DNA of 26,097 nucleotides, from the sequence record NC_074634.1. One strand, 5' to 3'. A program made the translations under genes and the position numbers. The notes under the pieces are model-generated. The model was given only the letters and a program-made list of their open reading frames with translations, was not told where the DNA came from and made no database searches. Shown in pieces: positions 2,306 to 25,292 of this stretch. Numbering within the stretch: position 1 is the first letter of the stretch; the number at the start of each line of letters is the position of its first letter.

Positions 2306-2329
2306 ATTCATAATATTTGATATATGAAT
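2306..2329. promoter_or_regulatory. Palindromic operator-like site ATTCATA-N10-TATGAAT (copy A)
   Basis: Perfect 7-bp arms with a 10-bp spacer, 50 nt upstream of the ATPase start. Confidence 0.7.
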
Positions 2330-2378
2330 TTTGCATGCAAGCGACAAGTTAAAAGATGTTTTCATTCAATAATTTATT

Positions 2379-3686
2379 GTGGCATCCCTAGAAGAATTTA
2401 AAAAACTCTTTGAAGAAAATTCTTTTATATTTAATCCAAGGGATGAAAATCGAATATTGTACTACATATTTAGGAATACCAATATCCCTGAAGAAAAGAA
2501 GGCTAATGCATTAAAGGCATGGAGACTTGGTAATGACAATCAGTACTTTGAAATGTATAAAGCGTTTACTGACGAAATAAAATTCATATCTAAAATCGTA
2601 AAATTTAAAGAGAAAGGCGGTGAAATTGTCGCTTACTTTCAAAATGGCTTTACTGGGCGTTTCGATCCAAGGATGTTGGCAGACAATCCGGATGACGCTT
2701 ACAATTTGATGCAATCCTACTTACTAGTTAAAATCAAAAAATCAACAGACAGTTGGGAAATTTACGACATTATCCCAGTTGAGCCTGCAAAAAATGTAGA
2801 TATTGCCAAGCAATTATTACAATTTGTTGAGGCTGAGCATGTAACATATTCAATTTTACTATATGCTTTTGGCTATGACGTTGAGAAGATGGATGCCAGT
2901 GATGTTTTCTATACAATCCCGAGATTTTTCCCACTTTTTGTTTCTCCATATTCAAAAAGGCGTTATAACGTTATCGAAATTTCAAACCCTGGGACTGGAA
3001 AAACTTCAGTTTTTACAATTTTACAAGAAGTTTTTAATTTTCGATATTATACTGAACCGCCAACTTATGCCAATTTGGTGTATGATGCAAGAAATAATGT
3101 ATTCGGTGCGGTTTATTTGGCAAAAGGGCTAATCTTTGATGAAATTCAAACTTGGAAAAATAGCACAAATCAGAAAAATATGGAAGCTATAAATTCAACA
3201 TTATCGACAGGAATTGAAAATTGCATTTGGACAAGGGGTGCAGGAACAGAAAGTAAATCTGCAGTCCTTCATAGATGCCTTCCAATAATATATGCGGGAA
3301 ATCCATTATTTTTGACATTAGATAGATTTGCATCCCCTGATGTTGAGGATTATTTGCAGAAGTACGAAATTTTTACTCCTGCAATATTGGATAGGATTCA
3401 TATCATCCAAGTTGGAATAAAGAAAACCTATGATCAAATTGGCAGTAGAAGAGTGCTTTATCCTTCGGTTTTAAAAGCTCTTATCGATATTTTGCAAGAA
3501 AAACTAAATCAACAATCCCATTTTGTTGATTGTCAAATTTTCACGTCAAGACGATATGAACAGGCTGTCGACATCCAATTGATGCTAAGGACTCTAGATC
3601 TCCAAAATGATGAAATTGAAAAGAACCAAGATGAATTTTGTGCAAAATTACAGCAATATATGCGATTTATGGGCCTTGGCGGGTGA
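2379..3686 (+). CDS. AAA+ ATPase (SIRV2 gp18/ORF436-like; MCM/BrxL-type ATPase domain)
   Basis: Walker A SNPGTGKTS, Walker B LIFDEIQ, downstream TRG and LDR (arginine-finger-like) motifs. Lies between the SSB and Cas4 genes. GTG start. Confidence 0.88.
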   Translation: MASLEEFKKLFEENSFIFNPRDENRILYYIFRNTNIPEEKKANALKAWRLGNDNQYFEMYKAFTDEIKFISKIVKFKEKGGEIVAYFQNGFTGRFDPRMLADNPDDAYNLMQSYLLVKIKKSTDSWEIYDIIPVEPAKNVDIAKQLLQFVEAEHVTYSILLYAFGYDVEKMDASDVFYTIPRFFPLFVSPYSKRRYNVIEISNPGTGKTSVFTILQEVFNFRYYTEPPTYANLVYDARNNVFGAVYLAKGLIFDEIQTWKNSTNQKNMEAINSTLSTGIENCIWTRGAGTESKSAVLHRCLPIIYAGNPLFLTLDRFASPDVEDYLQKYEIFTPAILDRIHIIQVGIKKTYDQIGSRRVLYPSVLKALIDILQEKLNQQSHFVDCQIFTSRRYEQAVDIQLMLRTLDLQNDEIEKNQDEFCAKLQQYMRFMGLGG

Positions 3687-3691
3687 GAAAA

Positions 3692-4318
3692 ATGGTTTAT
3701 GAAAATAAAATTAAAGAAAGCTTTAAGAAACTTTATCCAGAAAATATCCTTTATCCATCTGAAATTGCGTACTGCTTAAGAAAAACAATTTTGGCAAGAA
3801 GAATTCAACATATAAAAAATATTGGAAGTGAGGTCGCCGATTATGGGCTGGCAATCCATAATGATGTTGAGGCTTATTTTAAGGAGAAACTTGGTTGCGA
3901 AACTGAGAAAGCAATTGAATATGAGATTGAAGGTGTAAAAATTTCAGCAAGAGTAGATTTATTATGCGGAAGTGATCTACTTGAGTTAAAAACGGTTTCA
4001 CATTTTATCCGCCAGCCTTACCAAAATCACATTGTTCAAGTTTCGCTTTATTATCATATATTATCACAACTGAATTATAAAATTGATAATGTCTATCTTG
4101 TTTATATTAATAGACAAAATTATGATGTCCAAGAATTTAAAATTCAAAAAGATCAACTTGACCAGGGATTAAAAAGCGCAATTGAGTTTATAAGGAATTA
4201 CAAAAAATACAAAGATGAACAAAACATATTCAAAATTCCAATTGGGGATACAACATTTTGTAGGAGTTGCGAATTTAGGAATATTTGCTATGGGACAATA
4301 ACAAATTTCCTTAAATGA
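3692..4318 (+). CDS. Cas4-like RecB-family nuclease with predicted 4Fe-4S cluster (SIRV2 gp19-like)
   Basis: YPSEIAYCLRK (Cys1), RVDLL..ELKT (D..ExK), QVSLY and CRSCEFRNIC (three Cys). Start moved to ATG 3692 after GGTGA. Confidence 0.92.
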   Translation: MVYENKIKESFKKLYPENILYPSEIAYCLRKTILARRIQHIKNIGSEVADYGLAIHNDVEAYFKEKLGCETEKAIEYEIEGVKISARVDLLCGSDLLELKTVSHFIRQPYQNHIVQVSLYYHILSQLNYKIDNVYLVYINRQNYDVQEFKIQKDQLDQGLKSAIEFIRNYKKYKDEQNIFKIPIGDTTFCRSCEFRNICYGTITNFLK

Positions 4319-4674
4319 TTGCGCTATGCTTTTAAACCAATTATCGCAAAAAAATACCAGAGGTAGCCAACAGTATCGATAATTTATTTATTATTATTAA
4401 AAAAAATAAATAAAAAGTTATGAAATAAATACTTATGCATATTATATATTTTAAATTTGCATAACATATAGTTTATATTTTATATCTTAAACTATGCATG
4501 CTCATTTTAAGATAATTAGTTTAAGATTTACATTTTAAAATGATGCGATCCCACTTGGTATATATTTTTCTTTTCGTATTACTGTGATAAAATTGGATGC
4601 GTATTAGTGTATGATTCTCTGGATCACTCTAGATATGCTATGCTTTTAATCTGGTCATTATTAAGTATATTATT
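4319..4674. other. Long AT-rich non-coding region containing inverted repeats
   Basis: No ORF of 60 aa or more. TTTATTTATT (4383-4392) pairs with AATAAATAAA (4405-4414), and CATTTTAAAATG (4531-4542) is a perfect palindrome. Confidence 0.55.
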
Positions 4675-5001
4675 ATGAAAGGTAAATTTGACGATTGGAA
4701 TAAATATAGATCTGACGTTAATAAAATAATACTTGAGTATTTTAACAAAGTCGGTATAATGGCGACAACAAGAGCTTTATACTTCTCATTTGCGCAAAAA
4801 ATATTGGCAATTGTTAGAAAACATCAAGATGAAAGCCTTATCAACAAATTAATTGAGGGAAATATCCAATATTTCGTAACAGCGTTTGATGCAAACGAAA
4901 AAGTATTGCGTGATATTGTAAAAATTATAATTTTAGCTAAAATCGTTAAAATGAACCCAGATGATATACTGAAAGAAGTGCTAACGCAAAAATCCAACTA
5001 A
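4675..5001 (+). CDS. Major capsid protein paralogue (SIRV2 fold, N-terminally shortened)
   Basis: Aligns without gaps to the MCP C-terminal bundle: GIMATTRALYFSFAQKI vs GVTGPSRAIYQGYGLKV, and GNIQYFVTAFDANEKVL vs GLKAYYVSAYGANPEIL. Confidence 0.85.
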   Translation: MKGKFDDWNKYRSDVNKIILEYFNKVGIMATTRALYFSFAQKILAIVRKHQDESLINKLIEGNIQYFVTAFDANEKVLRDIVKIIILAKIVKMNPDDILKEVLTQKSN

Positions 5002-5005
5002 CCAT

Positions 5006-5029
5006 ATACAAAATATTATGTATATGGAT
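5006..5029. promoter_or_regulatory. Degenerate ATTCATA-N10-TATGAAT site upstream of the MCP gene (copy G)
   Basis: ATACAAA-ATATTATGTA-TATGGAT, followed by a TATA-like TTTTTATAA at about 5043-5051 and ATG at 5083. Confidence 0.45.
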
Positions 5030-5082
5030 TTTTTGCATTCAATTTTTATAAGCTATTAATTCTAATATTTAATTGACGAAAA

Positions 5083-5487
5083 ATGGCGAAAGGAAGAACA
5101 CCAAGAAGTTTTTCACAAAGGTATGGTAAATGGAACGCCAAATTTACTGCATTTAGCAATCCGACTGTTGCCAGCACAATATTGACTAATGTTGCCCCAA
5201 TTGCGCAAGGAAACTTCCAAACTAACGTACCTAAATTTACATCAGTTAACGAACAAGTTTCGGCGGTATTGACTCAGTACGGAGTTACCGGTCCTTCTAG
5301 AGCAATATACCAAGGCTACGGTTTGAAAGTCGCAAGAGCTTTAAATAGAATCGGCGCTGGTCCCGCCTTAACAAATATGGTTGCTGGTCTCAAAGCTTAT
5401 TACGTCAGTGCATATGGCGCTAACCCAGAAATACTTGACGCTGTGACTAACATAATCCTAGGATCTCCAACTGGATATGTAAGTTAA
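5083..5487 (+). CDS. mcp: Major capsid protein (134 aa, SIRV2 P134 family)
   Basis: MAKGRTPRSFSQRYGKWNAKF...ILGSPTGYVS is nearly collinear with the SIRV2 MCP sequence as recalled. Confidence 0.99.
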   Translation: MAKGRTPRSFSQRYGKWNAKFTAFSNPTVASTILTNVAPIAQGNFQTNVPKFTSVNEQVSAVLTQYGVTGPSRAIYQGYGLKVARALNRIGAGPALTNMVAGLKAYYVSAYGANPEILDAVTNIILGSPTGYVS

Positions 5488-5500
5488 ATTTTAAAGTCAA

Positions 5501-5526
5501 TTTTCTATTTTTTTCCCTTTCTTTTG
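5501..5526 (+). terminator. Oligo-T terminator after mcp
   Basis: Long pyrimidine/T tract beginning 14 nt after the stop codon. Confidence 0.6.
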
Positions 5527-5567
5527 CAATTGTTTTCTTTAAAAATGTAAACTTTTAACGTTTAATC

Positions 5568-5792
5568 ATGTTTGAGGAATATTTAAAGGAAAAAGGTTTT
5601 GAACCCCATCATATTTCAATTCTTAAAGATTTCTTGATTGAAATAAAAGAAGCATTAAGCATAAATGCTAGGAATTATGAATTAGACGAAATTATAAATT
5701 CTATTGTTGAATATTTTGCAATAACGTATGGATTGAAAAAAGAAGATCTTTATCGATTAATAAATGAGGCAATCCAGGACGGTGTTGTCTAA
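5568..5792 (+). CDS. 74-aa acidic protein; probable third, minimal MCP-fold paralogue
   Basis: Gapless 67-residue alignment to the MCP bundle with 12 identities and a conserved hydrophobic pattern (IVEYFAITYGLKKEDL vs LKAYYVSAYGANPEIL). Confidence 0.65.
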   Translation: MFEEYLKEKGFEPHHISILKDFLIEIKEALSINARNYELDEIINSIVEYFAITYGLKKEDLYRLINEAIQDGVV

Positions 5793-6812
5793 ATGGCAAA
5801 AACACTCATTTTGACTATGGGATATTCTTCAATTAAAAATGTCGCTGAAGATATTGCATCAGTCGTCGGTAATGCAGTGATTGATGTCGAACCAACTTTA
5901 TACGTAAATAACGTCAACAAATTCGATAGACTTATTGTATTTGTCCCATTTACTCCGCCTTTACTGAATAACTACTTGTTAGTTTACAATTATTTTCAGG
6001 GTGAGAAGTATTTCTATACGACAGTTGACGGAAAACCAGTTTTACAAGCCACAAATGAGTATATTGCAAGAAATATAAAGTATATACCAAATTCTCAGTT
6101 TTCAGCTGAAAATCTAAAATCTGCTAATCTTGGTGTTGATATTCCAGTTTTCCATGGGGTAAATTTCGACATAGTGAAAAAAGCAGAACAATTAGTTCCA
6201 AAATTGAGACAGAAACTAGATTTAGACTTTCCAGATAGCATAAAAATTGGAATTGTTACGGGGATGACAAAAAGGAAGAATATCGATTTGTTTGTCGAAA
6301 CAACTCGTTACTTAAATGAAAAAATGCCAGATGTTGCTAAAAATGTTCACTTCTTTGTAATTTCTCATGCAGATTTCCAAAAACTTGAAGTTCCGCAAAA
6401 CGTTCACTTTGTTGCACAGTTTGGTTACCAAAGCAGAGAAAAAGTATTTGCATTTTACGGTTCTATGGATTATGTATTTGTCCCATCTGGATGTGAAGGT
6501 TTTGGTCTCCCAGTCCTTGAGGCAATGGCTATGGGCACGCCGGTTATACACATGGCTATTCCACCGTTCACTGAATTTACATCATGGCAGTGGAACTTTT
6601 TGTTTAAAGATGACGACGTCATAGAATATTACGATAAAGACCGTGGTCAAATATGGAAAATTCATAGATTTAAACCAGAAACTGGGGCATTAGCGATAGC
6701 GACTGCTGTCATGGCAAGTGATAGAGAAGAAAGAAGTCGTCATCTTAAAGATTTAGCTAAAAAATATGATATTAAGTTTTTGTATAAAAGATTTTTAGAG
6801 GGTTTCGAATAA
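5793..6812 (+). CDS. Glycosyltransferase, GT-B fold (GT4-like; SIRV ORF335-like)
   Basis: FVPSGCEGFGLPVLEAMAMGTPVI signature and KRKN nucleotide-sugar-binding motif. Confidence 0.93.
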   Translation: MAKTLILTMGYSSIKNVAEDIASVVGNAVIDVEPTLYVNNVNKFDRLIVFVPFTPPLLNNYLLVYNYFQGEKYFYTTVDGKPVLQATNEYIARNIKYIPNSQFSAENLKSANLGVDIPVFHGVNFDIVKKAEQLVPKLRQKLDLDFPDSIKIGIVTGMTKRKNIDLFVETTRYLNEKMPDVAKNVHFFVISHADFQKLEVPQNVHFVAQFGYQSREKVFAFYGSMDYVFVPSGCEGFGLPVLEAMAMGTPVIHMAIPPFTEFTSWQWNFLFKDDDVIEYYDKDRGQIWKIHRFKPETGALAIATAVMASDREERSRHLKDLAKKYDIKFLYKRFLEGFE

Positions 6813-7739
6813 TGCATAAACAGTGCAGGGTCCAGTTGCCCAGGCATAGACATTTGATGGATTGTTGACTGAAAATTCTAAAATATCCCCTGGTAAAATT
6901 GGGAAATTGTTATATAGTTGATTTCCAATGTAAACAATATAATTTGATAAGTTTTGTAATATAATTTTTACAGTTTCTATCGCTGGACCAGCATAAATTG
7001 GCTGTGGAGTTGTTGAAATTGACAGTTGCAAACCCTGGATTGCGGGCGGAGACATGTAAAGCGTTAATTTGTTTATTGCGTTTGTTAAGGAGTTCATGGC
7101 TAAATAAACGTAAGCAAGTGCATAAAGCAGGGCGTCAGCAACTGAATAAATTGCATTTGATAATCCTATAACTATCTGATTTGTTAATTTTGCGCTAACC
7201 AAATAGATATTTTCGTAAACATTTTGTATTAATTGTGGTAAATATAAGACTGGAGAAATTACAGTTTTTAATTGATTATCAACTCCAATTACAACTTGAT
7301 ATAGGGTTTGATAAACATTTGCAATTTCTTGTTGTAATGCGCTCTGTGTCTGTGTAACTGTCCCCGCAGTTAATTTGGATATTGCGCTATAAACGTCATA
7401 AGGCATTTGTACAATTGCTTCATATAATTGCAATTGACTGTTCAAAATTGCTTGAATTTGTTGTATTGCAGAACCTACAAATCCTGCGATATAGATGGGG
7501 TCCTCCTCCGTTATAACGGGTTGTCCTGCGACATACACTGCTTCTGAAAAATTCCCAACTTGCGCAGTAATATTGTTTGGAACGTAAAGATTGCCATTTT
7601 GAAATAATTGTCTATCGATCAATGATCCGCCAAAATAAATTTCCGATAATGTTAGGACTGCGGTATTCCACATAGCGGATGTTAAGCGCTGGAATGGACT
7701 TGCTAAAAGGCTACTGATGGAGGCATATTGAATGCTCAT
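6795..7739 (-). CDS. Putative minor virion/fibre protein (314 aa), paralogue of the N-terminal half of ORF595
   Basis: N-terminal LTSAMWNTAVLTL...QNGNL, a central amphipathic helical segment and a C-terminal beta domain (ILQNLSNY..PILPGDILEFSVNNPSNV), all alignable with ORF595. Confidence 0.7.
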   Translation of the reverse strand: MSIQYASISSLLASPFQRLTSAMWNTAVLTLSEIYFGGSLIDRQLFQNGNLYVPNNITAQVGNFSEAVYVAGQPVITEEDPIYIAGFVGSAIQQIQAILNSQLQLYEAIVQMPYDVYSAISKLTAGTVTQTQSALQQEIANVYQTLYQVVIGVDNQLKTVISPVLYLPQLIQNVYENIYLVSAKLTNQIVIGLSNAIYSVADALLYALAYVYLAMNSLTNAINKLTLYMSPPAIQGLQLSISTTPQPIYAGPAIETVKIILQNLSNYIVYIGNQLYNNFPILPGDILEFSVNNPSNVYAWATGPCTVYALFETL

Positions 7740-7785
7740 GATTTAAATTTATATGCTTATAAGCTTAAAAATGATACATTTAATT

Positions 7786-8124
7786 ATGAGTCTTGACAAT
7801 ATTTTTGGACCAGTTAGACTCATTGTCGATAAATTAAAAGAATTGGAAATGAGAGGGGAGGCTTATGGATTTTCTCAATATTTGCCACAATCAATAATTT
7901 TACACAGAGTGACAGAAAATGGGGCATTATATCAGATATTTATACCGTCATTCCCTTACTATTTTGAATTTCTTGTCGAAAAAGACCCAAAAACTATGAT
8001 GTTGCAAATTTCAGACTATAGAATTGTTTATCCAGCACCAGTAAAAATTTCAGATTCACAAATTATGAAAGAACTAATCCAAGACTATCTTACTATGCAA
8101 CTTGGAGGTGGTGAAAATGAGTGA
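7786..8124 (+). CDS. Hypothetical protein (about 112 aa)
   Basis: Divergent from ORF314 and overlaps the start of the next gene. Start set at MSLDNIFG (7786); 7753 is the alternative. Confidence 0.7.
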   Translation: MSLDNIFGPVRLIVDKLKELEMRGEAYGFSQYLPQSIILHRVTENGALYQIFIPSFPYYFEFLVEKDPKTMMLQISDYRIVYPAPVKISDSQIMKELIQDYLTMQLGGGENE

Positions 8125-8365
8125 AGCCACTTTAATTCTTACTACAATTTCCACAAGTACAACTATAATATTATCAATTCTTACTCTTTACTATAAAATA
8201 AAACAAATGTTTCGTGAGGCAGTGAAAGAAATTGTAAAACAGGAATTGGATAATTTAGTGAGAGAGATTGCAAAAATAAAAGAAAAACAAGATGAACAAC
8301 AAAAAGATATTGAATACTTAAAACAAGAAATTGAAGAAATAAAAAAGAAAATTGAAAAATTATAA
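8117..8365 (+). CDS. Membrane-anchored coiled-coil protein (82 aa)
   Basis: Hydrophobic N-terminus (TLILTTISTSTTIILSILTLYY) followed by a heptad-rich charged tail. RBS GGTGA before ATG 8117. Confidence 0.75.
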   Translation: MSEATLILTTISTSTTIILSILTLYYKIKQMFREAVKEIVKQELDNLVREIAKIKEKQDEQQKDIEYLKQEIEEIKKKIEKL

Positions 8366-9062: not shown

Positions 9063-9113
9063 TTCAAATATTATTATTCAACATATGCTTTATAAGCAAA
9101 TTGGTATCCAGTT

Positions 9114-9461: not shown

Positions 9462-9469
9462 ATTTTTTA

Positions 9470-10885
9470 TTATCTGTTTGCTATGTTTTTAAAACCTTTA
9501 TTGTAAAATATAGGTTTATAATTTTGCAAGTACACTTTTTTCTGATCTAATTTTCTTTGTGTTTGTATCCTGCCGAGACCTTGTAGTTGTTCCCCGATTT
9601 GTTGTGCAAACTGAAGATCTGCGTCAGAAAGACCGTATAATTTCCATTTTTGTTTCCAATATTGCAAAAATTGATCATACGGTAGTGTCCTGGGACCAGC
9701 GGTATACGATAAGTTACCCTGGTATGTATATCTTGCGACTTGCAGTATTGCAGATGCCACCATTTTTGCATACCAGATGTTGTTATATTTCTTATTTACA
9801 ATTTTTTGTATTCTTTCGTATAATTCATAATTTGAAATATATGTTTCTGCATATTGAGAATTTGAAATATTTGTCGCGCCAGGTCCTAATTCTTGTAAAT
9901 GTTGTCCAAATATTTGACCGAAAACTGAAATTATTGCCCTCTCTGTCGATAAAATTGCAGATAATTGAATGTCGTTTAAGTTCTGATCTGTAGGAAAGTC
10001 TGGCATCAAAACGTTAAAGTCTAGAGGCGTAAGATCTAGGATTATACCAAGTGCATGTGAAAAGTTTTGAATTTTTATGTTGTCGGCAAGAAGTTGATAG
10101 TCATTTTCTCTTTCTGAAAAAGCGGACCGGTCAAACCAAGAGACGTCAAGTGCAACTCCGCTATCAATTATATTGTTTATCAGCGACAAAAATGCTAACA
10201 AATATTTTGCTAAGTCTGGTAAAGAATTGAAATATTGTTGTGGAGTTGTGTTTTTCTGTTGAGCCAATTTTGATAGTGCGTCAGCCACTCCAGTTTTTTC
10301 AACAAGTGAGTAGAGATAATTGTCAACCGCAGGAATTTGTGTTTTTCCAACTCCAAGATTTTCAAATGTTGTAACAGTTACTGTTGTCGGCGGATTAGCA
10401 AAATACGATTCTAATTTTTTACATGCCTGATTATTGAAAATTACTCCAGGGGCAGGGGCGTAAACTGAGGCATCAAAACTTGTTTCATCAAATATTGCAA
10501 TTTGGTACAGTACTGAACAATTTTCGACATATTGATCATAAAGTGAAGTAAAACTGTTGAGGGCGTCAAGTGCTGAAGTTGACGATAATGTCGCTAAATT
10601 GAAAATATTTGATTGCGCAGTGTTTGGTATGAAATTATTCAACACTGATGCTGAAAAATTGTTTATTGCATTTAGGAAATTAATTATGATTTGTGCGAAA
10701 GCAATTCCGTAATTGACATTCATATACGCTGGGACTACAACATTTTCAAGTGAAGTCGGTAAAGTGCTTTCAATTCCTGCTGACAACATTGCCTTGAAGG
10801 CAGGGTAAACATTTTGATTAAATATCTTATTGTAGAGATGATATTTCATTTGTGCAACTGATCTTGAACCTTTTTTCTTTGGCAT
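9470..10885 (-). CDS. Minor virion protein (SIRV2 ORF488-like)
   Basis: Size, N/Q/S-rich composition and position beside hjc. Start set at MPKKKGSRS (10885); 10918 is the alternative. Confidence 0.7.
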   Translation of the reverse strand: MPKKKGSRSVAQMKYHLYNKIFNQNVYPAFKAMLSAGIESTLPTSLENVVVPAYMNVNYGIAFAQIIINFLNAINNFSASVLNNFIPNTAQSNIFNLATLSSTSALDALNSFTSLYDQYVENCSVLYQIAIFDETSFDASVYAPAPGVIFNNQACKKLESYFANPPTTVTVTTFENLGVGKTQIPAVDNYLYSLVEKTGVADALSKLAQQKNTTPQQYFNSLPDLAKYLLAFLSLINNIIDSGVALDVSWFDRSAFSERENDYQLLADNIKIQNFSHALGIILDLTPLDFNVLMPDFPTDQNLNDIQLSAILSTERAIISVFGQIFGQHLQELGPGATNISNSQYAETYISNYELYERIQKIVNKKYNNIWYAKMVASAILQVARYTYQGNLSYTAGPRTLPYDQFLQYWKQKWKLYGLSDADLQFAQQIGEQLQGLGRIQTQRKLDQKKVYLQNYKPIFYNKGFKNIANR

Positions 10886-10926
10886 TTCACATCTGTTTAT
10901 TTTTTCTTTTCTTTTCATTTTTATTG

Positions 10927-10960
10927 CTCAATATCCAACAGTCATATTCATAATATTAAT
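10927..10960 (+). repeat. 34-bp inverted repeat, left arm (overlaps palindrome copy B, 10946-10969)
   Basis: CTCAATATCCAACAGTCATATTCATAATATTAAT matches the reverse complement of 13190-13223 at 33/34 nt. Confidence 0.9.
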
Positions 10961-11023
10961 TATATGCATGTTGCGCATTGAATTTATTTTAACTTGTTGC
11001 GACAAAATAAATAGTGATAAAAA

Positions 11024-11320
11024 ATGAGCCTAACTGGTTTAGAACAAATAGTATTAATTGGATTTTTAGCAGTTGTCGGGGCATTAGTTATTGGATTTGT
11101 AATCTCAGAGATTGCATATATTTTCAATAATAGGCAGGCAACTGAGGCATTTACAAATGCTATGCAACAAATGTCACAAACTACTGTCGTGGCAGTTGAG
11201 AGCGTAAAGGAGACGACAATTACTGCTATCAATTCGATAGCCGGTATGGCGGGATTGAATGACGTAAACTCATTAGCGCATGAAAAAGTGAAACAAAATA
11301 GCCAGTCTCAACAAAAATAA
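11024..11320 (+). CDS. Virus-associated pyramid protein (PVAP, SIRV2 P98 homologue)
   Basis: 98 aa with an N-terminal TM helix, then QMSQTTVVAVESVKETTITAIN and DVNSLAHEK, matching the recalled P98 segments QMSKSTVTAIESIKDTT and DVNSLAREK. Confidence 0.93.
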   Translation: MSLTGLEQIVLIGFLAVVGALVIGFVISEIAYIFNNRQATEAFTNAMQQMSQTTVVAVESVKETTITAINSIAGMAGLNDVNSLAHEKVKQNSQSQQK

Positions 11321-11350: not shown

Positions 11351-13138
11351 ATGATCATGAGTAATTTACCCTATCCTTTAAAATACAAATTGCCACTTCA
11401 GTATTTGTCGGTTGAAGATTGGAATAATTTTGTAAATGATCTTCTTCTAGTTTATAATTCACCAACTGGAATTTTAGCACAATATTATAATAATGGAAAT
11501 TTGCAAAATTTAAATGAAGTTTTTGCAAAAACTCTAAACGTTTTGCAACTTTATATTAATGGATATCAGGCATTATACAATCTCAAGAAAGTACTTGCGT
11601 ATACTTTCGGAAATGTTTTCTCATACTATACAACTTACCCGCCAATTAATTTTTCAAATGTTGAGCAGTTAACAAAACTGCCAAGTTTTTATGTGCAAAA
11701 ATACAATATACCTGTTGCAAAAGTCCAACAGATTTTCCAGATATATAATTTCATATTTGAAAAACATTTACCGCAAATTACAAAAACTATGCAAGTGCTA
11801 ATTCCAAAACTTTCATATCGTTATTTACCTTCAATAATTTCCGGCGGGATGGCGACAATTTCAGGATCGCAAACATTATCCCAAATTTTACAAAATGAGT
11901 TTGGAATTTCAAATTTTTCAACATGGAAAGGAGTAACAATTGAAAATTTAAGCAGTAACAACTTGTTTATCAATAATGCAATTGTGCTAATGCCGAAACA
12001 ATGTTTAAAAATTTCTGCCTCTTCACCGTCAGAAGTTACAATTACTGCTCAACAACCATCATTAATTTCAACATTATTAGAATTTGGGGCAATACCTGTT
12101 ACCGCCTATGCGATAACGGTAACGAATAGCCAATCTGATCCTACGTCTTCAAATTTTCAACAATTGCTAACGCTTAATCTATCTGGTATAATTTCTTCAC
12201 CTTCACAATTACTAAATTTGAAATTCTGTCAAGATGTAAACTGCAATACACAATTGTATGCATGGATTGAATATTATACCAGTGATTTATCCACAGTCTA
12301 CATCTGGGTTTTGTTACCCGGTGGAATACCGGCAAATTCTTCAATAACGATATACATGTTTGTAACAAATACAAATCAATATCCTTACACTGGGGTAAAT
12401 TCATATTATAACACGCAATATGATAACGGAATGTATGTTTTTGACGCCTACATGAACTTCATGGGAACTAGCCCAATACCGTCAAACTATAACGCATATA
12501 CAAATATTTCTGGTTTTCCACAATTTGTCGCTGAAAGCGGAACAACTCCAGGGTATTTATATACATTCAATAATGCCAGTGGTAGTTATGATACCGTTTA
12601 TATATCAGCCCCAAATTCTGCAAGAACCCCAGAAATATTTGAAGGCATGGCATATTACAACGGCAGTGCAGACCAACAAGGTATTATGTTTTTCGGGGAA
12701 CTATCGTCAGGGTGGTGTGGGGTTAGCAATCCTGGAAATGCATACTATCTCTGCGACAGTTGGACGACTGATTGGGATCCATACGATGGGGCTGCTTATA
12801 TTTGGCAGGGGTCAACACAAGAAAATTCGTATGGCGAAAGTCTCTTTACGTCAGACGGTTACAATTTCTATCAAGTCATTGCAACGTCAAGTGAAATAAT
12901 TTTCAATGGTGCGACAACAAATAATCCGACCACACCGTATGCACAACTCAACATTCAAAATGTTTTCACTTACAGTGGATCAATTACAGTTTATGGTGAT
13001 GTAGTAGGAACAATTGATGGTTCTGGAGGTGCAACTCACTACGGTTATTGGTACTATGTCAGGGCAAGGGCTTATCCGCCTAATGGAGTAATGCCGACTA
13101 ATTCGCAACCGCAGAAAATTATCGCATATATTACATGA
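11351..13138 (+). CDS. Putative fibre/adhesin with C-terminal DUF2341-like lectin/beta-sandwich region (595 aa)
   Basis: FQQLLTLN...LKF...LYAWIE...IWVLLP..IPANSSITIYM is the DUF2341 pattern. Ends in a Tyr/Gly/Thr-rich tail with YVRARAYPPNGVMP. Confidence 0.75.
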   Translation: MIMSNLPYPLKYKLPLQYLSVEDWNNFVNDLLLVYNSPTGILAQYYNNGNLQNLNEVFAKTLNVLQLYINGYQALYNLKKVLAYTFGNVFSYYTTYPPINFSNVEQLTKLPSFYVQKYNIPVAKVQQIFQIYNFIFEKHLPQITKTMQVLIPKLSYRYLPSIISGGMATISGSQTLSQILQNEFGISNFSTWKGVTIENLSSNNLFINNAIVLMPKQCLKISASSPSEVTITAQQPSLISTLLEFGAIPVTAYAITVTNSQSDPTSSNFQQLLTLNLSGIISSPSQLLNLKFCQDVNCNTQLYAWIEYYTSDLSTVYIWVLLPGGIPANSSITIYMFVTNTNQYPYTGVNSYYNTQYDNGMYVFDAYMNFMGTSPIPSNYNAYTNISGFPQFVAESGTTPGYLYTFNNASGSYDTVYISAPNSARTPEIFEGMAYYNGSADQQGIMFFGELSSGWCGVSNPGNAYYLCDSWTTDWDPYDGAAYIWQGSTQENSYGESLFTSDGYNFYQVIATSSEIIFNGATTNNPTTPYAQLNIQNVFTYSGSITVYGDVVGTIDGSGGATHYGYWYYVRARAYPPNGVMPTNSQPQKIIAYIT

Positions 13139-13189
13139 TTTGATTATTTTTTCCTTAAATGCAATAAATCAAACGACATAATTCTTATG

Positions 13190-13223
13190 ATTAATATTAT
13201 GAATATGACTGTTGAATATTGAG
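13190..13223 (-). repeat. 34-bp inverted repeat, right arm (overlaps palindrome copy C, 13181-13204)
   Basis: Reverse complement reads CTCAATATTCAACAGTCATATTCATAATATTAAT. Confidence 0.9.
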
Positions 13224-17825: not shown

Positions 17826-17849
17826 ATTCATATAATCAATATTATGAAT
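17826..17849. promoter_or_regulatory. Palindrome ATTCATA-N10-TATGAAT (copy D)
   Basis: Perfect arms, 50 nt upstream of the methyltransferase ATG, with TATA-like CTTTTAAAA between them. Confidence 0.7.
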
Positions 17850-17898
17850 ATGCAAATTGATTGTTTGCTTTTAAAACGTCCACACTAGGAATTAAAAT

Positions 17899-18966: not shown

Positions 18967-18967
18967 C

Positions 18968-20023: not shown

Positions 20024-20632
20024 TTTATTTTTTTGCATCAAATATTTGTAAATTTCATCAAACATTTTCCTAACTTTATCAGGGTCGTAGAAATATCTGC
20101 GCTTTTCCATGAAATAACCGCCGACATCCAGTGCGGGAAATTGGTATCTTACTACAACTTTGAGATCATTCCAATTTGAAGCCCCCAAATACCATGCTTT
20201 GTCTGGTTCAACTCTCCTAAAAAATTCGGGAAGACTGTAATCGTGAAGTCCAGGTGTTGCTGAGTAACCATAAAAATATTTGAATCCATGCTCTTTCAAT
20301 TGGTCTACAATTTCCAAATCGGGGTCTAATGAATGAATTGGTACAATAAAAATTATCCTACGGAGGACATCCAAATTTGCAATTTTTTCAACTTTTGGTA
20401 AAGGAGTATAATCGGGATATAGCGCAATCTTAATCTCTCTAATTTTTTTAATTAAAAGTTTAACATATTGGACATAAGCATATTGTCCGCCATGAATTAA
20501 AAATTCTTTATCGTCAAAAAATTCTGGATAAATGTACATATTTGGATAGCGAATATTATATTTTCTCATAGTATTAATATGTGGACCTTTCGCCACCCCA
20601 ACTATTGGATAAGTTTGAGACATACCACACAT
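20000..20632 (-). CDS. TIM-barrel protein, TGT/DpdA-like (DUF6610-like)
   Basis: Ordered motifs FFDD, IALYPDY, IFIVPIH, YGYS, WYLGAS and ALDVGG follow the strand-end pattern of TGT-fold proteins. Recognised by eye only. Confidence 0.55.
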   Translation of the reverse strand: MCGMSQTYPIVGVAKGPHINTMRKYNIRYPNMYIYPEFFDDKEFLIHGGQYAYVQYVKLLIKKIREIKIALYPDYTPLPKVEKIANLDVLRRIIFIVPIHSLDPDLEIVDQLKEHGFKYFYGYSATPGLHDYSLPEFFRRVEPDKAWYLGASNWNDLKVVVRYQFPALDVGGYFMEKRRYFYDPDKVRKMFDEIYKYLMQKNKSIFDYIK

Positions 20633-21886
20633 TCACTCTGGCGGTATTTCTTTAAATATTTCATCAAGTTGCACACCTTGCATTTTTCTAATGACGTATG
20701 TCAGTATTCCAACAATTGGCGGTATAAATATCGTTGCAATATCAAAATATAGATTTCCAGTAAACATTTCTGACCTAAATTGTAAATTTGTAAATGAAGA
20801 ATATAAAACCATAGTTGCACTAAAGACCAACACGATTGCAGACAATACCGCAGTCGGCAAAATTCTTCTATCTTCCTTTACAAATTTCAAACTTGCAAAT
20901 GCAACAATTAGATAATTCCAAAATATAAACCATAGGTCATCAACAATCAAACTAACGTGAAAGCCCAGATAATTTTCTACAAAGTTGAAAATTTCTGCAA
21001 TTCCAAAACTAAGTAAAATTGAATTTGTTGGCGTTCCGCCTTTAACATTTGCTAAGAAAGCGGGCAAGACTCTATCAAACGATAGCGCAAACATGACTCT
21101 AGTTGTCGCCCCTGCATTTATCATAGCATATAGCAAATACCATGTTAATGCAGATAATGCAACAATTTCTAATTCTAGATTTACGCCGACTATAACTATT
21201 AAAATTGCAAATATCGCAGTAACGGTATATGCAATAAAATATCCTGCAAGTAAGCTTTTGCCAATTTTTTGCATTTCTCCCGCAAAATATGATGGGGAAT
21301 TTATAAATGCGTAAAGCATCATTACAAAAAGCGCAGTCATAGTGAGAGTATTTGTATTTATCTCAAGTTGTGTAGGTAAAACTGCATGATTTAAATTAGT
21401 CACAATCATAATTATAATACCAAGAATCTGAAATGCCACTAATGCGACAACTGCTTTCGCATAATATTTCACTTTTGACGCTAACAAATAGATTATTCCA
21501 ATATAAACTGTCGTAATTAAGAAAAGATCTAAATTTGACAAATTAAATCGCATAAATTCTAAAGACGCTAGGACTGGCATAGACAACCAAAATGATGTTA
21601 GGACCGCCATACCGCTAATTGTCCCTACAATTCCTCCAAAAGCTCTTGCAACATAAACATAATCTCCAGTAGACCTTGGGATTATTCTGTTCAACAAATA
21701 GTAGTTTAGCATTAGTGGAATACCTAAAATTGTCGCTAAAAGAATTGATAAAAACGCGTTAGCGTGAATGAGAAATAAAACGTAGGAAACTGCCCCCGCA
21801 GGTCCTAAAAAAGCGAAATTTAAGGAAAAAACATCTATTGGCTTAAATTCCTTTATTAACCCAGTTGACTGCCTTAAGAATTTCAT
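20633..21886 (-). CDS. APC-superfamily amino acid/polyamine permease (about 11-12 TM)
   Basis: FLRQSTGLIKEF..FSLNFAFLGP, PRSTGDYVYVARAFG and RVMFALSFDRVLPAFLANV are APC signatures; multiple hydrophobic segments. Confidence 0.9.
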   Translation of the reverse strand: MKFLRQSTGLIKEFKPIDVFSLNFAFLGPAGAVSYVLFLIHANAFLSILLATILGIPLMLNYYLLNRIIPRSTGDYVYVARAFGGIVGTISGMAVLTSFWLSMPVLASLEFMRFNLSNLDLFLITTVYIGIIYLLASKVKYYAKAVVALVAFQILGIIIMIVTNLNHAVLPTQLEINTNTLTMTALFVMMLYAFINSPSYFAGEMQKIGKSLLAGYFIAYTVTAIFAILIVIVGVNLELEIVALSALTWYLLYAMINAGATTRVMFALSFDRVLPAFLANVKGGTPTNSILLSFGIAEIFNFVENYLGFHVSLIVDDLWFIFWNYLIVAFASLKFVKEDRRILPTAVLSAIVLVFSATMVLYSSFTNLQFRSEMFTGNLYFDIATIFIPPIVGILTYVIRKMQGVQLDEIFKEIPPE

Positions 21887-21904
21887 ACCAATTTAACCAA
21901 CCGC

Positions 21905-21921
21905 TGACTACATTTTTAAAT
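21905..21921 (-). promoter_or_regulatory. Conserved TATA-GTC promoter for the permease operon, overlapping the tfb stop codon
   Basis: - strand reads ATTTAAAAATGTAGTCA, about 30 nt upstream of ATG 21886. Confidence 0.65.
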
Positions 21922-22720
21922 TTAAAATTTTTGCATTTTTCCTAAGCCCCGCCCCAGTGACCCCGCATTTTTCTTCAATCATTGGCTGGGTTATAAGGTA
22001 TCCACTTTGTTTAGCTAAATAATATAAAATTGTACATGCAACAGTTTTTGGATTTTTACCCTGGGCTTCAATTTCTTTTGCAATATTAAGCGCTTTTTCA
22101 ATTATCTCAATTGGCAATTCCAGCCTCACTCCACATTCTTTTATATAATCTTCAATTATAAATCGTGGTATTTTTTCATCAAATTCTTTTAATATCCTAA
22201 AATACATACTAACAAATTCCTTTTTTGGGATTCCGAATAATTCATCAACTTTTTTATAATATTCATCAAATGGCATTATAATTTTCAATTTCCTATAAGC
22301 TAAATAAATAGAAACCAAAACAATAATTTCATATCCTAGATATCTTAAATGTTTATTTTTCCATAGCTTTTGTAAAATTCTACCTGCCTCTTGTTTTATT
22401 GCATCATTAGCATTCAATTTTTCAACTGTAGATGATAAAAATCTTAAAGCATGCACTAAAATTCTCTTATTATTTGAATAAATTGCACATTTTTTCATCT
22501 TTTTTGGTTTAATTGCAGTCGTTGGTAGGAAACCTGAATTAACGAAATTGTTTGGGTTTATTGCTTTAGCTCTTGCCCTATCTTCAAACTGCTCAACATT
22601 ATAAGCCCTCCAATCAATACCTTCATCTACAACTCTATCTTCTAGAACTTCTCCAGTTTCAGTGCAAATATATTCGCCTCTCTCTGCATCAAATATGATC
22701 TTATCAGGAGGACAGCTCAT
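21908..22720 (-). CDS. tfb: Transcription initiation factor B homologue
   Basis: N-terminal CPPDKIIFDAERGEYICTETGEVLED..DWRAY closely matches the Sulfolobales TFB1 ribbon/B-reader as recalled; two degenerate cyclin repeats follow. Confidence 0.92.
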   Translation of the reverse strand: MSCPPDKIIFDAERGEYICTETGEVLEDRVVDEGIDWRAYNVEQFEDRARAKAINPNNFVNSGFLPTTAIKPKKMKKCAIYSNNKRILVHALRFLSSTVEKLNANDAIKQEAGRILQKLWKNKHLRYLGYEIIVLVSIYLAYRKLKIIMPFDEYYKKVDELFGIPKKEFVSMYFRILKEFDEKIPRFIIEDYIKECGVRLELPIEIIEKALNIAKEIEAQGKNPKTVACTILYYLAKQSGYLITQPMIEEKCGVTGAGLRKNAKILNLKM

Positions 22721-22782
22721 GAGAAGATCTCAAACCGCCTACATTTTTATTTCTTGCCAAGAACTACAATTTCAAACTTCAT

Positions 22783-22806
22783 ATTCATAATATTATAAAT
22801 ATGCAT
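22783..22806. promoter_or_regulatory. Palindrome copy E upstream of tfb
   Basis: ATTCATA-ATATTATAAA-TATGCAT, 63 nt upstream of the tfb start. Confidence 0.65.
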
Positions 22807-22828
22807 TGTTTGTTCAAATTAAGACAAT

Positions 22829-22883
22829 GTAGAAATAGTATATCAAATGTGAGAAAAATTAACCATAAAAAAAGAGAATTAAC
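22829..22883 (-). repeat. Cassette-boundary repeat R3
   Basis: - strand reads GTTAATTCTCTTTTTTTATGGTTAATTTTTCTCACATTTGATATACTATTTCTAC, starting at the stop codon of the 74-aa ORF. Confidence 0.8.
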
Positions 22884-23103
22884 CGACAATTTGACCCAAA
22901 ATTGGCTCAAGCCATGGTGGAAAGAATAAATGGCAACTGCCATCACTGCACGAATGGCAAGTATCAACATCAATAACGATAATTATTGGCAAAACTCCTG
23001 GATATTTTCTTGAAAATCTCTCAGCCTTTTCTTGGACATAACCGCTTTGAGATTTCAACCATTCTTTGTATTCTTTTTCATCTTTAAATTTTAGAACTTT
23101 CAT
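22879..23103 (-). CDS. Hypothetical protein (74 aa) with a CxxCxxxxCH cluster
   Basis: TCHSCSDGSCH may bind metal. RBS GGTGA upstream. Confidence 0.7.
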   Translation of the reverse strand: MKVLKFKDEKEYKEWLKSQSGYVQEKAERFSRKYPGVLPIIIVIDVDTCHSCSDGSCHLFFPPWLEPILGQIVG

Positions 23104-23112
23104 ACCTTAGCA

Positions 23113-23256
23113 TCACCCATATACGGCTTCTAGGTACCAAAGTAAAGCCTCACATTCATCTTCTGGCAAACTTGCCTCCTCCAAAGCGACAATAGTGTCT
23201 GGGCTATATCCCTCCAAGCCATATCCCTTTTGCTTTAAAAGCTCTAGGCAGTTCAT
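23113..23256 (-). CDS. Small acidic protein (47 aa), absent from the ORF track
   Basis: Reads MNCLELLKQKGYGLEGYSPDTIVALEEASLPEDECEALLWYLEAVYG*. GGTGAG lies 6 nt upstream, its own TGA forms the GGTGA RBS of the next gene, and it fills the gap almost exactly. Confidence 0.75.
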   Translation of the reverse strand: MNCLELLKQKGYGLEGYSPDTIVALEEASLPEDECEALLWYLEAVYG

Positions 23257-23263
23257 TGACAAC

Positions 23264-23599
23264 TCACCTTATTCTTAAGATGTAATAAAGATCATAACCA
23301 ATTTTATTCAACTCTTCTTCAGTTTGGATTACTTGTCCTTCCTCTAACCTTCTCTTCAATACAAATGCAATTGCGTTATCTCCAGGTTTGAAATAAATTG
23401 CAATCCTGCTTGTCTGAACTGGAATTCCCAATAAATTCGATAAAATGTTAGCAGTCGCACTGTGACCGATAGCACTTACAATATTTCCGGCATTATTTAC
23501 GATATCTCTTGCCTCCTTAAAATTTATCTTTTTTATTTGAAATTCTGCTTCCTGCCCTTCAAACGGGACAATTAGGCTATTTAGGAGATACAAGACCAT
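23264..23599 (-). CDS. acrIII-1: AcrIII-1 ring nuclease (DUF1874; cA4-degrading anti-CRISPR)
   Basis: LYLLNSLIVP, SAIGHSATA (catalytic His), SRI and KRRLEEGQV match the DUF1874 / SIRV1 gp29 / STIV B116 family. RBS GGTGAG before ATG 23599. Confidence 0.95.
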   Translation of the reverse strand: MVLYLLNSLIVPFEGQEAEFQIKKINFKEARDIVNNAGNIVSAIGHSATANILSNLLGIPVQTSRIAIYFKPGDNAIAFVLKRRLEEGQVIQTEEELNKIGYDLYYILRIR

Positions 23600-23619
23600 T
23601 CGACTCACCTTAAAATGAA

Positions 23620-23644
23620 CTTGATGACAACATTTTTAAATCTT
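23620..23644 (-). promoter_or_regulatory. acrIII-1 promoter, identical to 1252-1276
   Basis: 25/25 match AAGATTTAAAAATGTTGTCATCAAG. Confidence 0.85.
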
Positions 23645-23648
23645 TAAA

Positions 23649-24491
23649 TCATATAACTCTACAAAATTGCTTTTTCTTACATTCTTCAATTATATCTTCA
23701 AATTTAATATTATCTATTTCATTCGTAAATCCATAATCTTGTAAAATTACTTTATACATATTATCTCCAACAACAAATTCGGAAACTTTATAGAACCATG
23801 CCTTATGCCTGTCAGCATCTAGTTCTAATGCCAACCACCCAATATTTGCCTCCCTCCTACCGTACCAGTAAACTTCTTGCCTACCTCTTGGAATAAATAC
23901 TGCCTTCTCTTTAAGCTTATTGTATAAATCCAAATCTTGATATTCAAAAATGTAAAGACCATGACCTAGAATTCTCCAGTAAATTTCCCATAACGCAAAA
24001 TGATCAATTATATCTGGTAATGACAATATGTTGAAATTACCAATATTGACGACATAAGGATGTGCAATTCCAAATTTTTCAGCAGGAGTTAACTTAGTTG
24101 CTAAATCATTTGCAAAGACTTTATTTAATCTTGTAGTATCCACAGTGTAATAATTATAAAGTATAAGATTATTATTGGAAATTATACCATGAATTGCTAA
24201 TTTATCAAATTTCCATAAAATGTACTCTGTCGCAATCATATCTTGAATTGATGGGGCATCTGGACCTCTTGGGTGGGTATGCAAAATGGCGTGAACAGTT
24301 TCTGGCATGTACTTTTGCAAAGGACTGAGATCTGCACTGCCTTTGTCACCCTGATAATAATCGCTAAACCACTCGCCTAAAACAATTAAATATTCTCTAT
24401 CTGTGGTTTTTGACTTTTGATAAACATCTTTCAAAAAATCTAGGTTTTTAAAAATAGTAAGAACATTATTTCTAACTTTCGATCTGGACAT
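23649..24491 (-). CDS. JAB/MPN+ (JAMM) domain protein with an unknown C-terminal domain (280 aa)
   Basis: Upstream Glu (REY) followed by HTHPRGPDAPSIQD, an exact H-x-H-x7-S-x2-D motif (nt 24240-24281). Confidence 0.8.
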   Translation of the reverse strand: MSRSKVRNNVLTIFKNLDFLKDVYQKSKTTDREYLIVLGEWFSDYYQGDKGSADLSPLQKYMPETVHAILHTHPRGPDAPSIQDMIATEYILWKFDKLAIHGIISNNNLILYNYYTVDTTRLNKVFANDLATKLTPAEKFGIAHPYVVNIGNFNILSLPDIIDHFALWEIYWRILGHGLYIFEYQDLDLYNKLKEKAVFIPRGRQEVYWYGRREANIGWLALELDADRHKAWFYKVSEFVVGDNMYKVILQDYGFTNEIDNIKFEDIIEECKKKQFCRVI

Positions 24492-24556
24492 ATAGCATCA
24501 ATATATTAAGAAGTGATAACATTTATCAAGATTTCACAGAAAATAAGGAGTAGTTG

Positions 24557-24600
24557 TAATAATATCTGGAAAGTGAAAAAAATCAACCAAAAAAATAGAT
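24557..24600 (-). repeat. Degenerate cassette-boundary repeat R5
   Basis: - strand ATCTATTTTTTTGGTTGATTTTTTTCACTTTCCAGATATTATTA aligns with R1, including the CAGATA segment. Confidence 0.6.
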
Positions 24601-24663
24601 AGAGACAAAAGTTGAAAATTAAAAATTAGGAAATTGGAGAAAAGGAAAAAAAGATTAACTTAA

Positions 24664-25188
24664 TCAATAATGTGTGTAATAAATAAGTGCATCAAGAGCA
24701 ATAATGTCCTTACCGTCTAAAATGTCCTTCAACATTTTCTGCAACCCCTGCGGTATGCTAAACTCAACATGTTCCCCGTTCCTCAAATACTGGATTTTAG
24801 CAATCCCATTGTTATATGTTACCTCAACATTTTCAATCTGGATATAATCGATAACTTCTCCGCCAGGTATGTCAGTGTATTCTGGAACAGCACAAATTGC
24901 AATGTTATCGTTCCTTGTTTTTAAGAGAGCTATTTTCCCAACGATTGCAATTCTACCAAGTTTACTCACTGCAACAGAATAGTAGAAACCCCCTAGCTTA
25001 TATAGTACATATGACGGCACCATTGTATCTTCAAAGCCTGGCACCAAAAACTTTATGTAAACCAATTTTTTGAACTGAACTTGTTGCTCTTCTACTTGAG
25101 TTTGAATTTGACCTTGGCTTAACTCTTGATTTTCCATTTGGTTTGACTCTTGAGTTTTAACTTGATTTATCTCTTCTTCTTCGCTCAT
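24664..25188 (-). CDS. Hypothetical protein (174 aa) with a Q/E-rich disordered N-terminus
   Basis: RBS GGTGA and an upstream AGAAAGATTTAAATA BRE/TATA. Confidence 0.8.
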   Translation of the reverse strand: MSEEEEINQVKTQESNQMENQELSQGQIQTQVEEQQVQFKKLVYIKFLVPGFEDTMVPSYVLYKLGGFYYSVAVSKLGRIAIVGKIALLKTRNDNIAICAVPEYTDIPGGEVIDYIQIENVEVTYNNGIAKIQYLRNGEHVEFSIPQGLQKMLKDILDGKDIIALDALIYYTHY

Positions 25189-25268
25189 CCTTTTTCACCA
25201 ATATATACTTCTCAATACAAATATTTAAATCTTTCTATCATGAAATCACTTAGATTTACGTTTCCATT

Positions 25269-25292
25269 ATTCATATTATCCATATTATGTTT
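25269..25292. promoter_or_regulatory. Degenerate palindrome copy F
   Basis: ATTCATA-TTATCCATAT-TATGTTT, 81 nt upstream of ORF174. Confidence 0.45.

Follow-up and report, generated by a model that had tools for sequence, protein, structure and literature searches.

Introduction

What marks the promoters from which rudiviruses express their core genes? These genes have been reported to use distinct, non-early promoters, which were left there as "data not shown" (Nat Commun 2024, PMC11065993). The window analyzed here, 26,097 bases long, corresponds at 100% identity to the entire genome of Saccharolobus solfataricus rod-shaped virus 1 (SSRV1, MN876841; Rudiviridae, Hoswirudivirus). An earlier inspection of its letters (the sequence-only reading) had listed a 24-bp palindrome, ATTCATA-N10-TATGMAT, at seven places upstream of transcription units. 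The units marked in this way are those of the ATPase/Cas4, the major capsid protein (MCP), ORF482, the pyramid protein, the tail fiber, the methyltransferase/glycosyltransferase (MTase-GT) cluster and the viral TFB, with a further copy near ORF174. Our analysis indicates, with a probability of roughly 0.8, that the palindrome serves as a cis-regulatory site for protein binding at those core promoters that do not possess a strong TATA/GTC core.

Results

A palindrome enriched in the intergenic DNA of SSRV1

A pattern scan of the whole genome with ATTCATA-N10-TATGMAT yielded four exact matches (at 2306, 10946, 17826 and 22783), where 0.01 would be expected; the site at 13181 departs from the pattern in one position, that at 25269 in two and that at 5006 in three. 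In order to prevent circularity, a position weight matrix (PWM) was trained solely on the sites of the related viruses MRV1, ARV2 and ARV3, and SSRV1 was then scanned with it. Genome-wide, the six top windows were, in this order, those at 10946, 13181, 22783, 17826, 2306 and 5006, and all six are intergenic in a genome of which 8.3% is intergenic. Windows of at least 12 bits numbered six in intergenic DNA versus 0.024 expected, a count that was reached in 0 of 2000 dinucleotide-preserving shuffles of SSRV1 intergenic DNA (23.5% GC). Also, in a de novo search for dyads the palindrome came out first in both SSRV1 and ARV3, and the highest-ranking dyads of SIRV2 and SIRV8 included its 18-bp short form. 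The exact matches, the PWM ranking and the shuffles thus bear out the palindrome at the seven places where it had been seen, and an equal frequency in open reading frames or in AT-matched shuffles was not observed. The target genes that had been named for the sites agree with the GenBank annotation (Table 1).

Two sites had been listed as degenerate 24-mers. That upstream of the MCP gene is no such thing, as it consists of the 18-bp short form (5006-5023) inside a 26-bp palindrome (5002-5027). The site at 25269 is present with its two mismatches, but it is weak (PWM rank 8, 11.5 bits). Within the ORF482 coding region, positions 9823-9846 match the PWM with 12.2 bits, and MRV1 and ARV2 share this match, which may have arisen by chance and been retained through coding constraint, or may represent an internal site.

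Table 1. Positions of the palindromes and accompanying features in the SSRV1 window.
Feature	Coordinates	Strand	Gene or unit	TATA-like box	Start codon	Distance to start codon (nt)	Remarks
24-bp palindrome	2306-2329		gp08 (ATPase)/gp09 (Cas4) unit	2349-2358	2379	50	Exact match; PWM 20.0 bits; orthologous site in MRV1, ARV2 and ARV3
Nested 26-bp palindrome	5002-5027		gp11 (MCP)	5043-5052	5083	54	Core 5006-5023 is the 18-bp short form; TTCAAT box 5035-5043
24-bp palindrome	10946-10969		Divergent promoters of gp20 (ORF482, minus) and gp21 (pyramid protein, plus)	10916-10925 (minus, gp20); 10983-10992 (plus, gp21)		55 (gp21)	Scores highest with the PWM genome-wide (28.5 bits); found in all four hoswirudiviruses
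24-bp palindrome	13181-13204		gp23 (ORF1115, tail-fiber protein)		13271	67	PWM 27.1 bits; one mismatch
24-bp palindrome	17826-17849		gp25-gp27 methyltransferase/glycosyltransferase cluster	17869-17878	17899	50	Exact on both strands; ortholog in 4/4 hoswirudiviruses, with many substitutions and the AT.C.T...A.G.AT frame retained
24-bp palindrome	22783-22806		gp30 (viral TFB, minus)	22742-22752	22720	63	Exact match
Weak copy	25269-25292		Between gp35 (ORF174, minus) and gp36 3' end		25188	81	
CTCAAT-N8-GTCAT flank abutting palindrome	2287-2305; 10927-10945; 13205-13223	+; +; -					3 matches vs 0.01 expected
GCATTGAAT box	10975-10983	+	Between palindrome and gp21 TATA-like box				MCP counterpart 5035-5043
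gp05 gene (single-chain tandem ribbon-helix-helix)	1299-1580	+	gp05				Own promoter 1255-1276, strong TATA/GTC, without palindrome

Conservation across rudiviruses

The palindrome was followed through the genomes of MRV1, ARV2, ARV3, ARV1, SIRV1, SIRV2, SIRV8, SRV, SBRV1 and SMRV1. The nearest relatives of SSRV1 are MRV1, ARV2 and ARV3, with about 80-84% nucleotide identity in the core, and together with SSRV1 they make up the four hoswirudiviruses compared. Orthologous sites exist in all four at the ATPase, MCP, ORF482/pyramid-protein, ORF1115 and MTase promoters, and the frame AT.C.T...A.G.AT is preserved through many substitutions. When gap columns are counted as mismatches, mean pairwise identity amounts to 0.83 for the arms and 0.79 for the center, compared to 0.43 for the remaining intergenic columns. 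The copy between the divergent genes is present in 4/4 hoswirudiviruses, and no upstream gene ends at that spot. For the TFB gene, the site at 22783 has an ortholog in ARV2 and none in ARV3, and the MRV1 record stops before this region.

ARV3 displays both turnover of sites and their duplication within promoters. Pairs of palindromes, 60-72 bp apart, occur there at the MCP (6881/6941), pyramid-protein (13217/13277) and MTase (20085/20157) genes, and the ARV3 sites often combine an ATTCAT arm with an AT(T/A)CCT arm, CCT/AGG being preferred in one arm.

A relaxed pattern, AT.C.T-W6/12-A.G.AT, gives about one chance match per genome, so it was used for presence or absence and not for statistics. 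Outside the hoswirudiviruses, SIRV1 and SIRV2 have the 18-bp form ahead of their MCP genes, as has ARV3, and the MCP gene of SIRV8 is preceded by a near-perfect 18-bp copy with an exact copy slightly further upstream. Other core genes of SIRV1, SIRV2, SIRV8, SRV and SBRV1 are also preceded by 18- or 24-bp forms. The palindrome is therefore conserved across five rudivirus genera. ARV1 has one weak copy, and no copy was found in the SMRV1 genome. SMRV1 possesses strongly over-represented dyads of its own, based on CTTAAG and situated mostly in the terminal repeats (816-880 and 26563-26630); they were considered as a form of the palindrome and rejected, their sequence being unrelated.

A scan of IMG/VR with the short form returned known rudiviruses and several hot-spring contigs bearing multiple copies. 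In hot-spring metagenome contigs from relatives of SSRV1, the sequence upstream of the ORF1115 palindrome is replaced (window 13113-13186), and the variants rejoin SSRV1 at 13181 in one case and at 13186 in another.

Anatomy of the element

The informative positions are A1, T2, C4, T6 and their mirror images, with C4 and G21 scoring highest (2.35 bits each). One half-site, AT-W-C-A-T-W-A-T-A-T, is used in two registers: in the 18-bp form the same halves stand 6 bp closer than in the 24-bp form, and the distance from the conserved C to the conserved G is 11 bp instead of 17 bp. The 10-bp spacer of the original description agrees with the matches to the 24-bp pattern, but it is not free, as the dyad runs on into it (AATATT...) and its conservation almost equals that of the arms.

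A third half-site, TTGAAT- or TTCAAT-like, is often found 7-8 bp past the palindrome on the gene-proximal side, and the TATA-like box comes next. The extension CTCAAT-N8-GTCAT, which had been noticed at three copies, was found three times (Table 1), and each of the three flanks holds such a TTGAAT-like half-site 7-8 nt from the palindrome edge. The GCATTGAAT-type box keeps to the palindrome where the distance to the TATA-like box grows, as in the ARV3 MTase promoter. Between palindrome and TATA-like box, the gap is 13 bp for the MCP and pyramid-protein genes, 19-20 bp for ATPase, MTase and ORF482, 19 or 29 bp for ORF1115 (which has two candidate boxes), 30 bp for TFB and 39 bp for ORF174. These positions support the statement that the sites are promoter-proximal and upstream of TATA-like boxes.

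A distance of 50-81 nt from site to start codon had been given as well. It holds for the seven sites in Table 1 but not for ORF482 as annotated, which starts 28 nt from its site; to the start used in sister viruses the distance is 61 nt. The annotated gp20 (ORF482) start codon falls inside the TATA-like box 10916-10925 (window 10883-10918), and an in-frame ATG at 10885 corresponds to the start annotated for the ORF482 counterparts in MRV1, ARV2 and ARV3. The gp20 protein therefore probably has 471 residues, counted from the ATG at 10885.

The flank of the SSRV1 ORF1115 palindrome (13205-13223) is a near copy of the ORF482 flank (10927-10945), and MRV1 and ARV2 differ there, which suggests that promoter modules may have been exchanged within the SSRV1 genome.

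No enrichment of the palindrome in host-order genomes

Host genomes were reached via the host homologues of gp02. The palindrome with its 10-bp spacing had 0 copies in five Sulfolobales genomes (about 11 Mb). When 151 Sulfolobales genomes were scanned for the pair of half-sites at spacings of 2-16, the counts resembled those of a reversed-pattern control (as judged by eye and not summed), and among the matches listed for these genomes (384 further matches exist) none had the AT-only center of the viral sites. As the palindrome is not enriched in genomes of the host order, it appears to be a viral invention rather than a site borrowed from a host regulon.

Palindrome-bearing and palindrome-free promoters

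We consider the palindrome to be a transcription-factor site because it adjoins TATA-like boxes on their upstream side without overlapping them, because one copy lies between divergent genes in all four hoswirudiviruses and because copies were duplicated within ARV3 promoters. Very probably, it is the docking site of a paired regulator that co-ordinates genes for replication, capsid, tail fiber, egress and modification. Two copies of a sequence-specific factor, either as a dimer or as two pseudo-dimeric monomers arranged head to head, would bind to the palindrome, and the bound factor would help or hinder the assembly of TBP/TFB. The palindrome-bearing units would thereby share one program, apart from the strong promoters that lack the palindrome. 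Both the binding of a protein and its effect on transcription initiation are what we infer from the arrangement of the sites. The sequence-only reading had gone further and proposed a dimeric activator of mainly mid/late genes. A dimeric or paired factor fits the dyad well, but a repressor that nucleates distally, in the manner of SvtR, fits it equally; for SvtR, distal nucleation followed by spreading has been proposed, which would give repression.

A different class of promoters lacks the palindrome. The promoters of gp05 and gp33 share an identical 22-nt core that comprises a TATA box and a GTC element (1255-1276 and, on the minus strand, 23620-23641), and the gp36 promoter (25611-25625) is of a similar TATA/GTC type. 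The product of gp33 is a DUF1874 protein, of the acrIII-1 family (PMC11065993). This palindrome-free TATA/GTC class is probably the early class.

Several observations weigh against a regulatory role of the palindrome, or against its breadth. The overall identity of about 84% among SSRV1, MRV1 and ARV2 partly explains why their orthologous sites are conserved, and the similarity of sites within the genome is in part due to exchange between promoters, given that the ORF1115 flank copies the ORF482 flank. The TATA-like boxes and transcription starts were placed from the sequence, and a search of sequencing runs found no RNA runs carrying SSRV1. The weak site at 25269 has its sole counterpart at the end of the ARV2 record. 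Finally, the core promoters of gp10, gp12, gp14, gp15, gp18 and gp22 do not possess a site, and the palindrome is therefore not a general mark of late genes.

The palindromes might instead be hairpin terminators, junctions of module recombination, or signals for replication or packaging. Such readings could draw on the fact that 6/7 sites are also downstream of a co-directional gene, that two palindromes come after a conserved T-rich module and that metagenome variants lose homology right at the palindrome edge. However, the predicted RNA hairpins are made up of A and U only and have little stability (-2.9 to -10.4 kcal/mol at 37 C; the hosts grow near 78 C), and 2/4 are no better than those of shuffles; a stable stem followed by a T run was not found at the palindromes. 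Archaeal termination relies on T tracts, and these are supplied separately. Moreover, the palindrome of the divergent promoters has no upstream gene, and palindromes follow the TATA-like boxes in their position and are duplicated within ARV3 promoters. Taken together, we regard all of these readings as very improbable.

The T-rich module, of 29 nt, occurs three times (0 expected), at 467-495 and 2238-2266 (plus) and at 22847-22875 (minus). Its copies lie directly 3' of the gp02, gp07 and gp31 stop codons, two of them with a palindrome about 40 nt further on, and the module is probably a shared terminator.

Candidate proteins for binding the palindrome

Two candidates, the viral protein gp05 and the host protein Sta1, are rated about equally, and each of them is a tentative choice. 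In the case of gp05, two monomers would be placed head to head on the half-sites and would switch the core units on or off. The AlphaFold2 model of gp05 (mean pLDDT 81) contains the succession beta-alpha-alpha twice, as in a single-chain tandem ribbon-helix-helix (RHH) protein, and the second half of gp05 matches CopG/Arc-like families. The best hits in a fold comparison were chains of the F-plasmid relaxosome (probability 0.8-0.99, TM 0.58-0.72), which we take to be TraY; single-chain Arc, VirC2 and AvtR (rank 43) followed further down. Searches of solved structures with the gp05 sequence and profile gave nothing significant. RHH proteins such as Arc, MetJ and CopG tolerate packing at 7-11 bp, and this could explain the two spacings.

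The distribution of gp05 is in favor of this candidate, which the sequence-only reading had named as a double RHH protein and which retains its place on the list. The family is present in every palindrome-bearing rudivirus examined, always beside the gene for the single-stranded DNA-binding protein (SSB), and it is also encoded on the palindrome-bearing rudivirus contigs from IMG/VR. SMRV1 possesses neither the gp05 family nor the palindrome, and ARV1, with its one weak palindrome, encodes a 56-residue single-RHH relative of gp05. The gp05 promoter, which shares an identical stretch of 22 nt with the gp33 promoter, is palindrome-free. But the co-occurrence is based on two independent absences only, and its pattern is matched by the acetyltransferase gp18. 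The residues of the DNA-facing strand vary strongly between genera while the half-site hardly does, the gp05 promoter lacks the palindrome although RHH regulators are usually autoregulated, and the published consensus sites of AvtR and SvtR do not match the palindromes. In our judgment gp05 is the leading virus-encoded candidate, and it is conceivable, if rather doubtful, that its family constitutes a family-wide regulator that has the palindrome as its operator and acts as a master switch for core replication, structural and egress genes.

Between their Rep and SSB genes, SIRV1 (6051-6320) and SIRV2 (9468-9737) each have a conserved but unannotated frame of some 89 codons that is homologous to gp05. 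The conserved first strand of the predicted protein is encoded upstream of any ATG, GTG or TTG, which suggests a non-canonical start.

Alternatively, the Lrs14-family winged-helix protein Sta1 of the host, or a paralogue, might bind to the palindrome, the virus having evolved optimal sites for it, and stimulate the recruitment of TBP/TFB, an effect demonstrated in vitro for SIRV1. A pull-down with SIRV1 promoter DNA recovered Sta1, which in vitro activates the promoters P134 and P399 (PMC1635249). The oligonucleotide Reg2, taken from protected region 2, represents the core-promoter Sta1 footprint of the SIRV1 MCP promoter, with a second site about 30 bp upstream (PMC1635249). The 18-bp palindrome of SIRV1 (11074-11091) lies 34 bp upstream of Reg2 (11102-11131), measured from center to center, and by its geometry it would coincide with the upstream P134 footprint, a coincidence that we derive from the text of that study and from coordinates. 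A Sta1 site is expected some 30 bp ahead of the core promoter, as in SIRV1 P134, and the 34 bp in SIRV1 and the gaps of 13-39 bp in SSRV1 agree with this. Furthermore, 2/3 Sta1-responsive fragments carry the palindrome, the Sta1 consensus ATNT-N8-WNAT lies between the conserved C and G in 6/7 SSRV1 sites, and proteins of the Sta1 type are found throughout the Sulfolobales, which would explain the use of one half-site across viruses of four host genera.

These experimental indications from SIRV1 are indirect, and the specificity of Sta1 is a difficulty. Its consensus is nearly free of information, with 25 matches in 2063 nt of intergenic DNA, and ignores C and G at the most informative positions; a recent review describes the binding of Lrs14-type proteins including Sta1 as AT-driven and not sequence-specific, and a dissociation constant of about 10 micromolar was reported for Sta1 on Reg2 (PMC1635249). 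The lack of enrichment in genomes of the host order also speaks against Sta1, and ARV1 infects Acidianus like ARV3, yet it is without the element apart from its one weak copy. Sta1, which had been put forward in the sequence-only reading as well, thus stays a candidate with a modest chance of being correct.

Another viral protein is an unlikely reader of the palindrome. Those considered were the aCcr1-like RHH protein gp02, the RHH protein gp04, the winged helix-turn-helix protein gp37, and the viral TFB together with a partner. Among the viral DNA-binding proteins examined, only gp02 and gp05 are found in every palindrome-bearing virus sampled. For gp02, one may cite that it is encoded by nearly all rudiviruses, that its DNA-reading strand is almost invariant and that its SIRV2 orthologue, gp21, binds to some middle/late viral promoters. 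However, the motif of the latter and of aCcr1, AGTATTA, has six matches in the window and none of them overlaps a palindrome, and Sulfolobales genomes encode full-length homologues of gp02 with 66-83% identity, yet the genomes of this order show no enrichment of the palindrome. The distribution of gp04, confined to Italian viruses, is narrower than that of the palindrome. The suggestion of gp37 fails, as its relatives occur in ARV2 only and it cannot serve a motif of five genera. In SSRV1 and ARV2, the TFB gene itself bears the palindrome, but TFB is encoded only by hoswirudiviruses, and the palindrome is also present in the TFB-less SIRV1, SIRV2, SIRV8, SRV and SBRV1, so a partner of the viral TFB has to be given up as well. 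The sites of known viral regulators are not at the palindromes either: the SvtR consensus ATnnTTCAAnAnnnnnAAAATG has no match anywhere in the window, and the AvtR consensus ATnnTnnTAnnACnTT has two, both of them in coding sequence and none at a palindrome.

Discussion

The closest precedent for the palindrome is the upstream Sta1 region of the SIRV1 MCP gene, ORF134 (Kessler et al., 2006; PMC1635249). Like the SSRV1 element, this region forms an imperfect inverted repeat, some 30 bp upstream of the orthologous core promoter; judged by its coordinates, it represents the 18-bp short form in SIRV1, and the published consensus, of 16 bp, is contained in the six SSRV1 sites mentioned above. Unlike the palindrome, that consensus was derived from two promoters and omits the C/G pair as well as the 18- and 24-bp dyads (PMC1635249).

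Other systems resemble the palindrome in part. The operators of SvtR (SIRV1) and AvtR (AFV6) lie, like the palindromes, in viral promoters and form imperfect inverted repeats, in some cases well ahead of the TATA box, and spreading of the bound proteins from there has been proposed; like gp05, AvtR has its tandem RHH units in a single chain. In contrast to these operators, the palindromes lack the SvtR and AvtR consensus, and SvtR targets its own gene and ORF1070, the SIRV2 ORF1070 promoter being without palindrome. Like the element described here, sites of Ptr2 from M. jannaschii are palindromic, lie directly upstream of the B recognition element (BRE) and TATA box without overlapping them and are sometimes doubled, as in ARV3. 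Ptr2 acts via recruitment of TBP, but organism, protein family and sequence are different, and activation is known for Ptr2 whereas the palindrome is known from its sequence. The early anti-defence promoter motif (Nat Commun 2024, PMC11065993) is also virus-specific and shared by one temporal gene class in rudiviruses; unlike the palindrome, it surrounds the strong TATA/BRE core of terminal accessory genes.

A literature search for the literal motif strings returned only unrelated papers. Within the literature that we could reach, the palindrome is undescribed as a shared rudiviral promoter motif, and only the repeat in the Sta1 footprint of SIRV1 P134 touches on it. The present analysis confirms and extends the original observation by two spacing classes, a family-wide distribution and the lack of enrichment in genomes of the host order, and there is good support for reading the palindrome as the site of a dimeric regulator of the core genes.

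Rudiviruses are the best-studied archaeal viruses, and for the timing of their core genes the palindrome provides a concrete handle, as a high-information dyad that is common to MCP, tail-fiber, egress and replication promoters across five genera. It allows the old Sta1 footprint to be reinterpreted, points to a conserved gene of SIRV1 and SIRV2 that had escaped annotation, and leaves as the main candidate factors the tandem RHH protein gp05 and the host protein Sta1. If the tentative assignment to gp05 were true, gp05 would be a dedicated viral regulator of the temporal cascade, and the two geometries of 18 and 24 bp would give graded responses.

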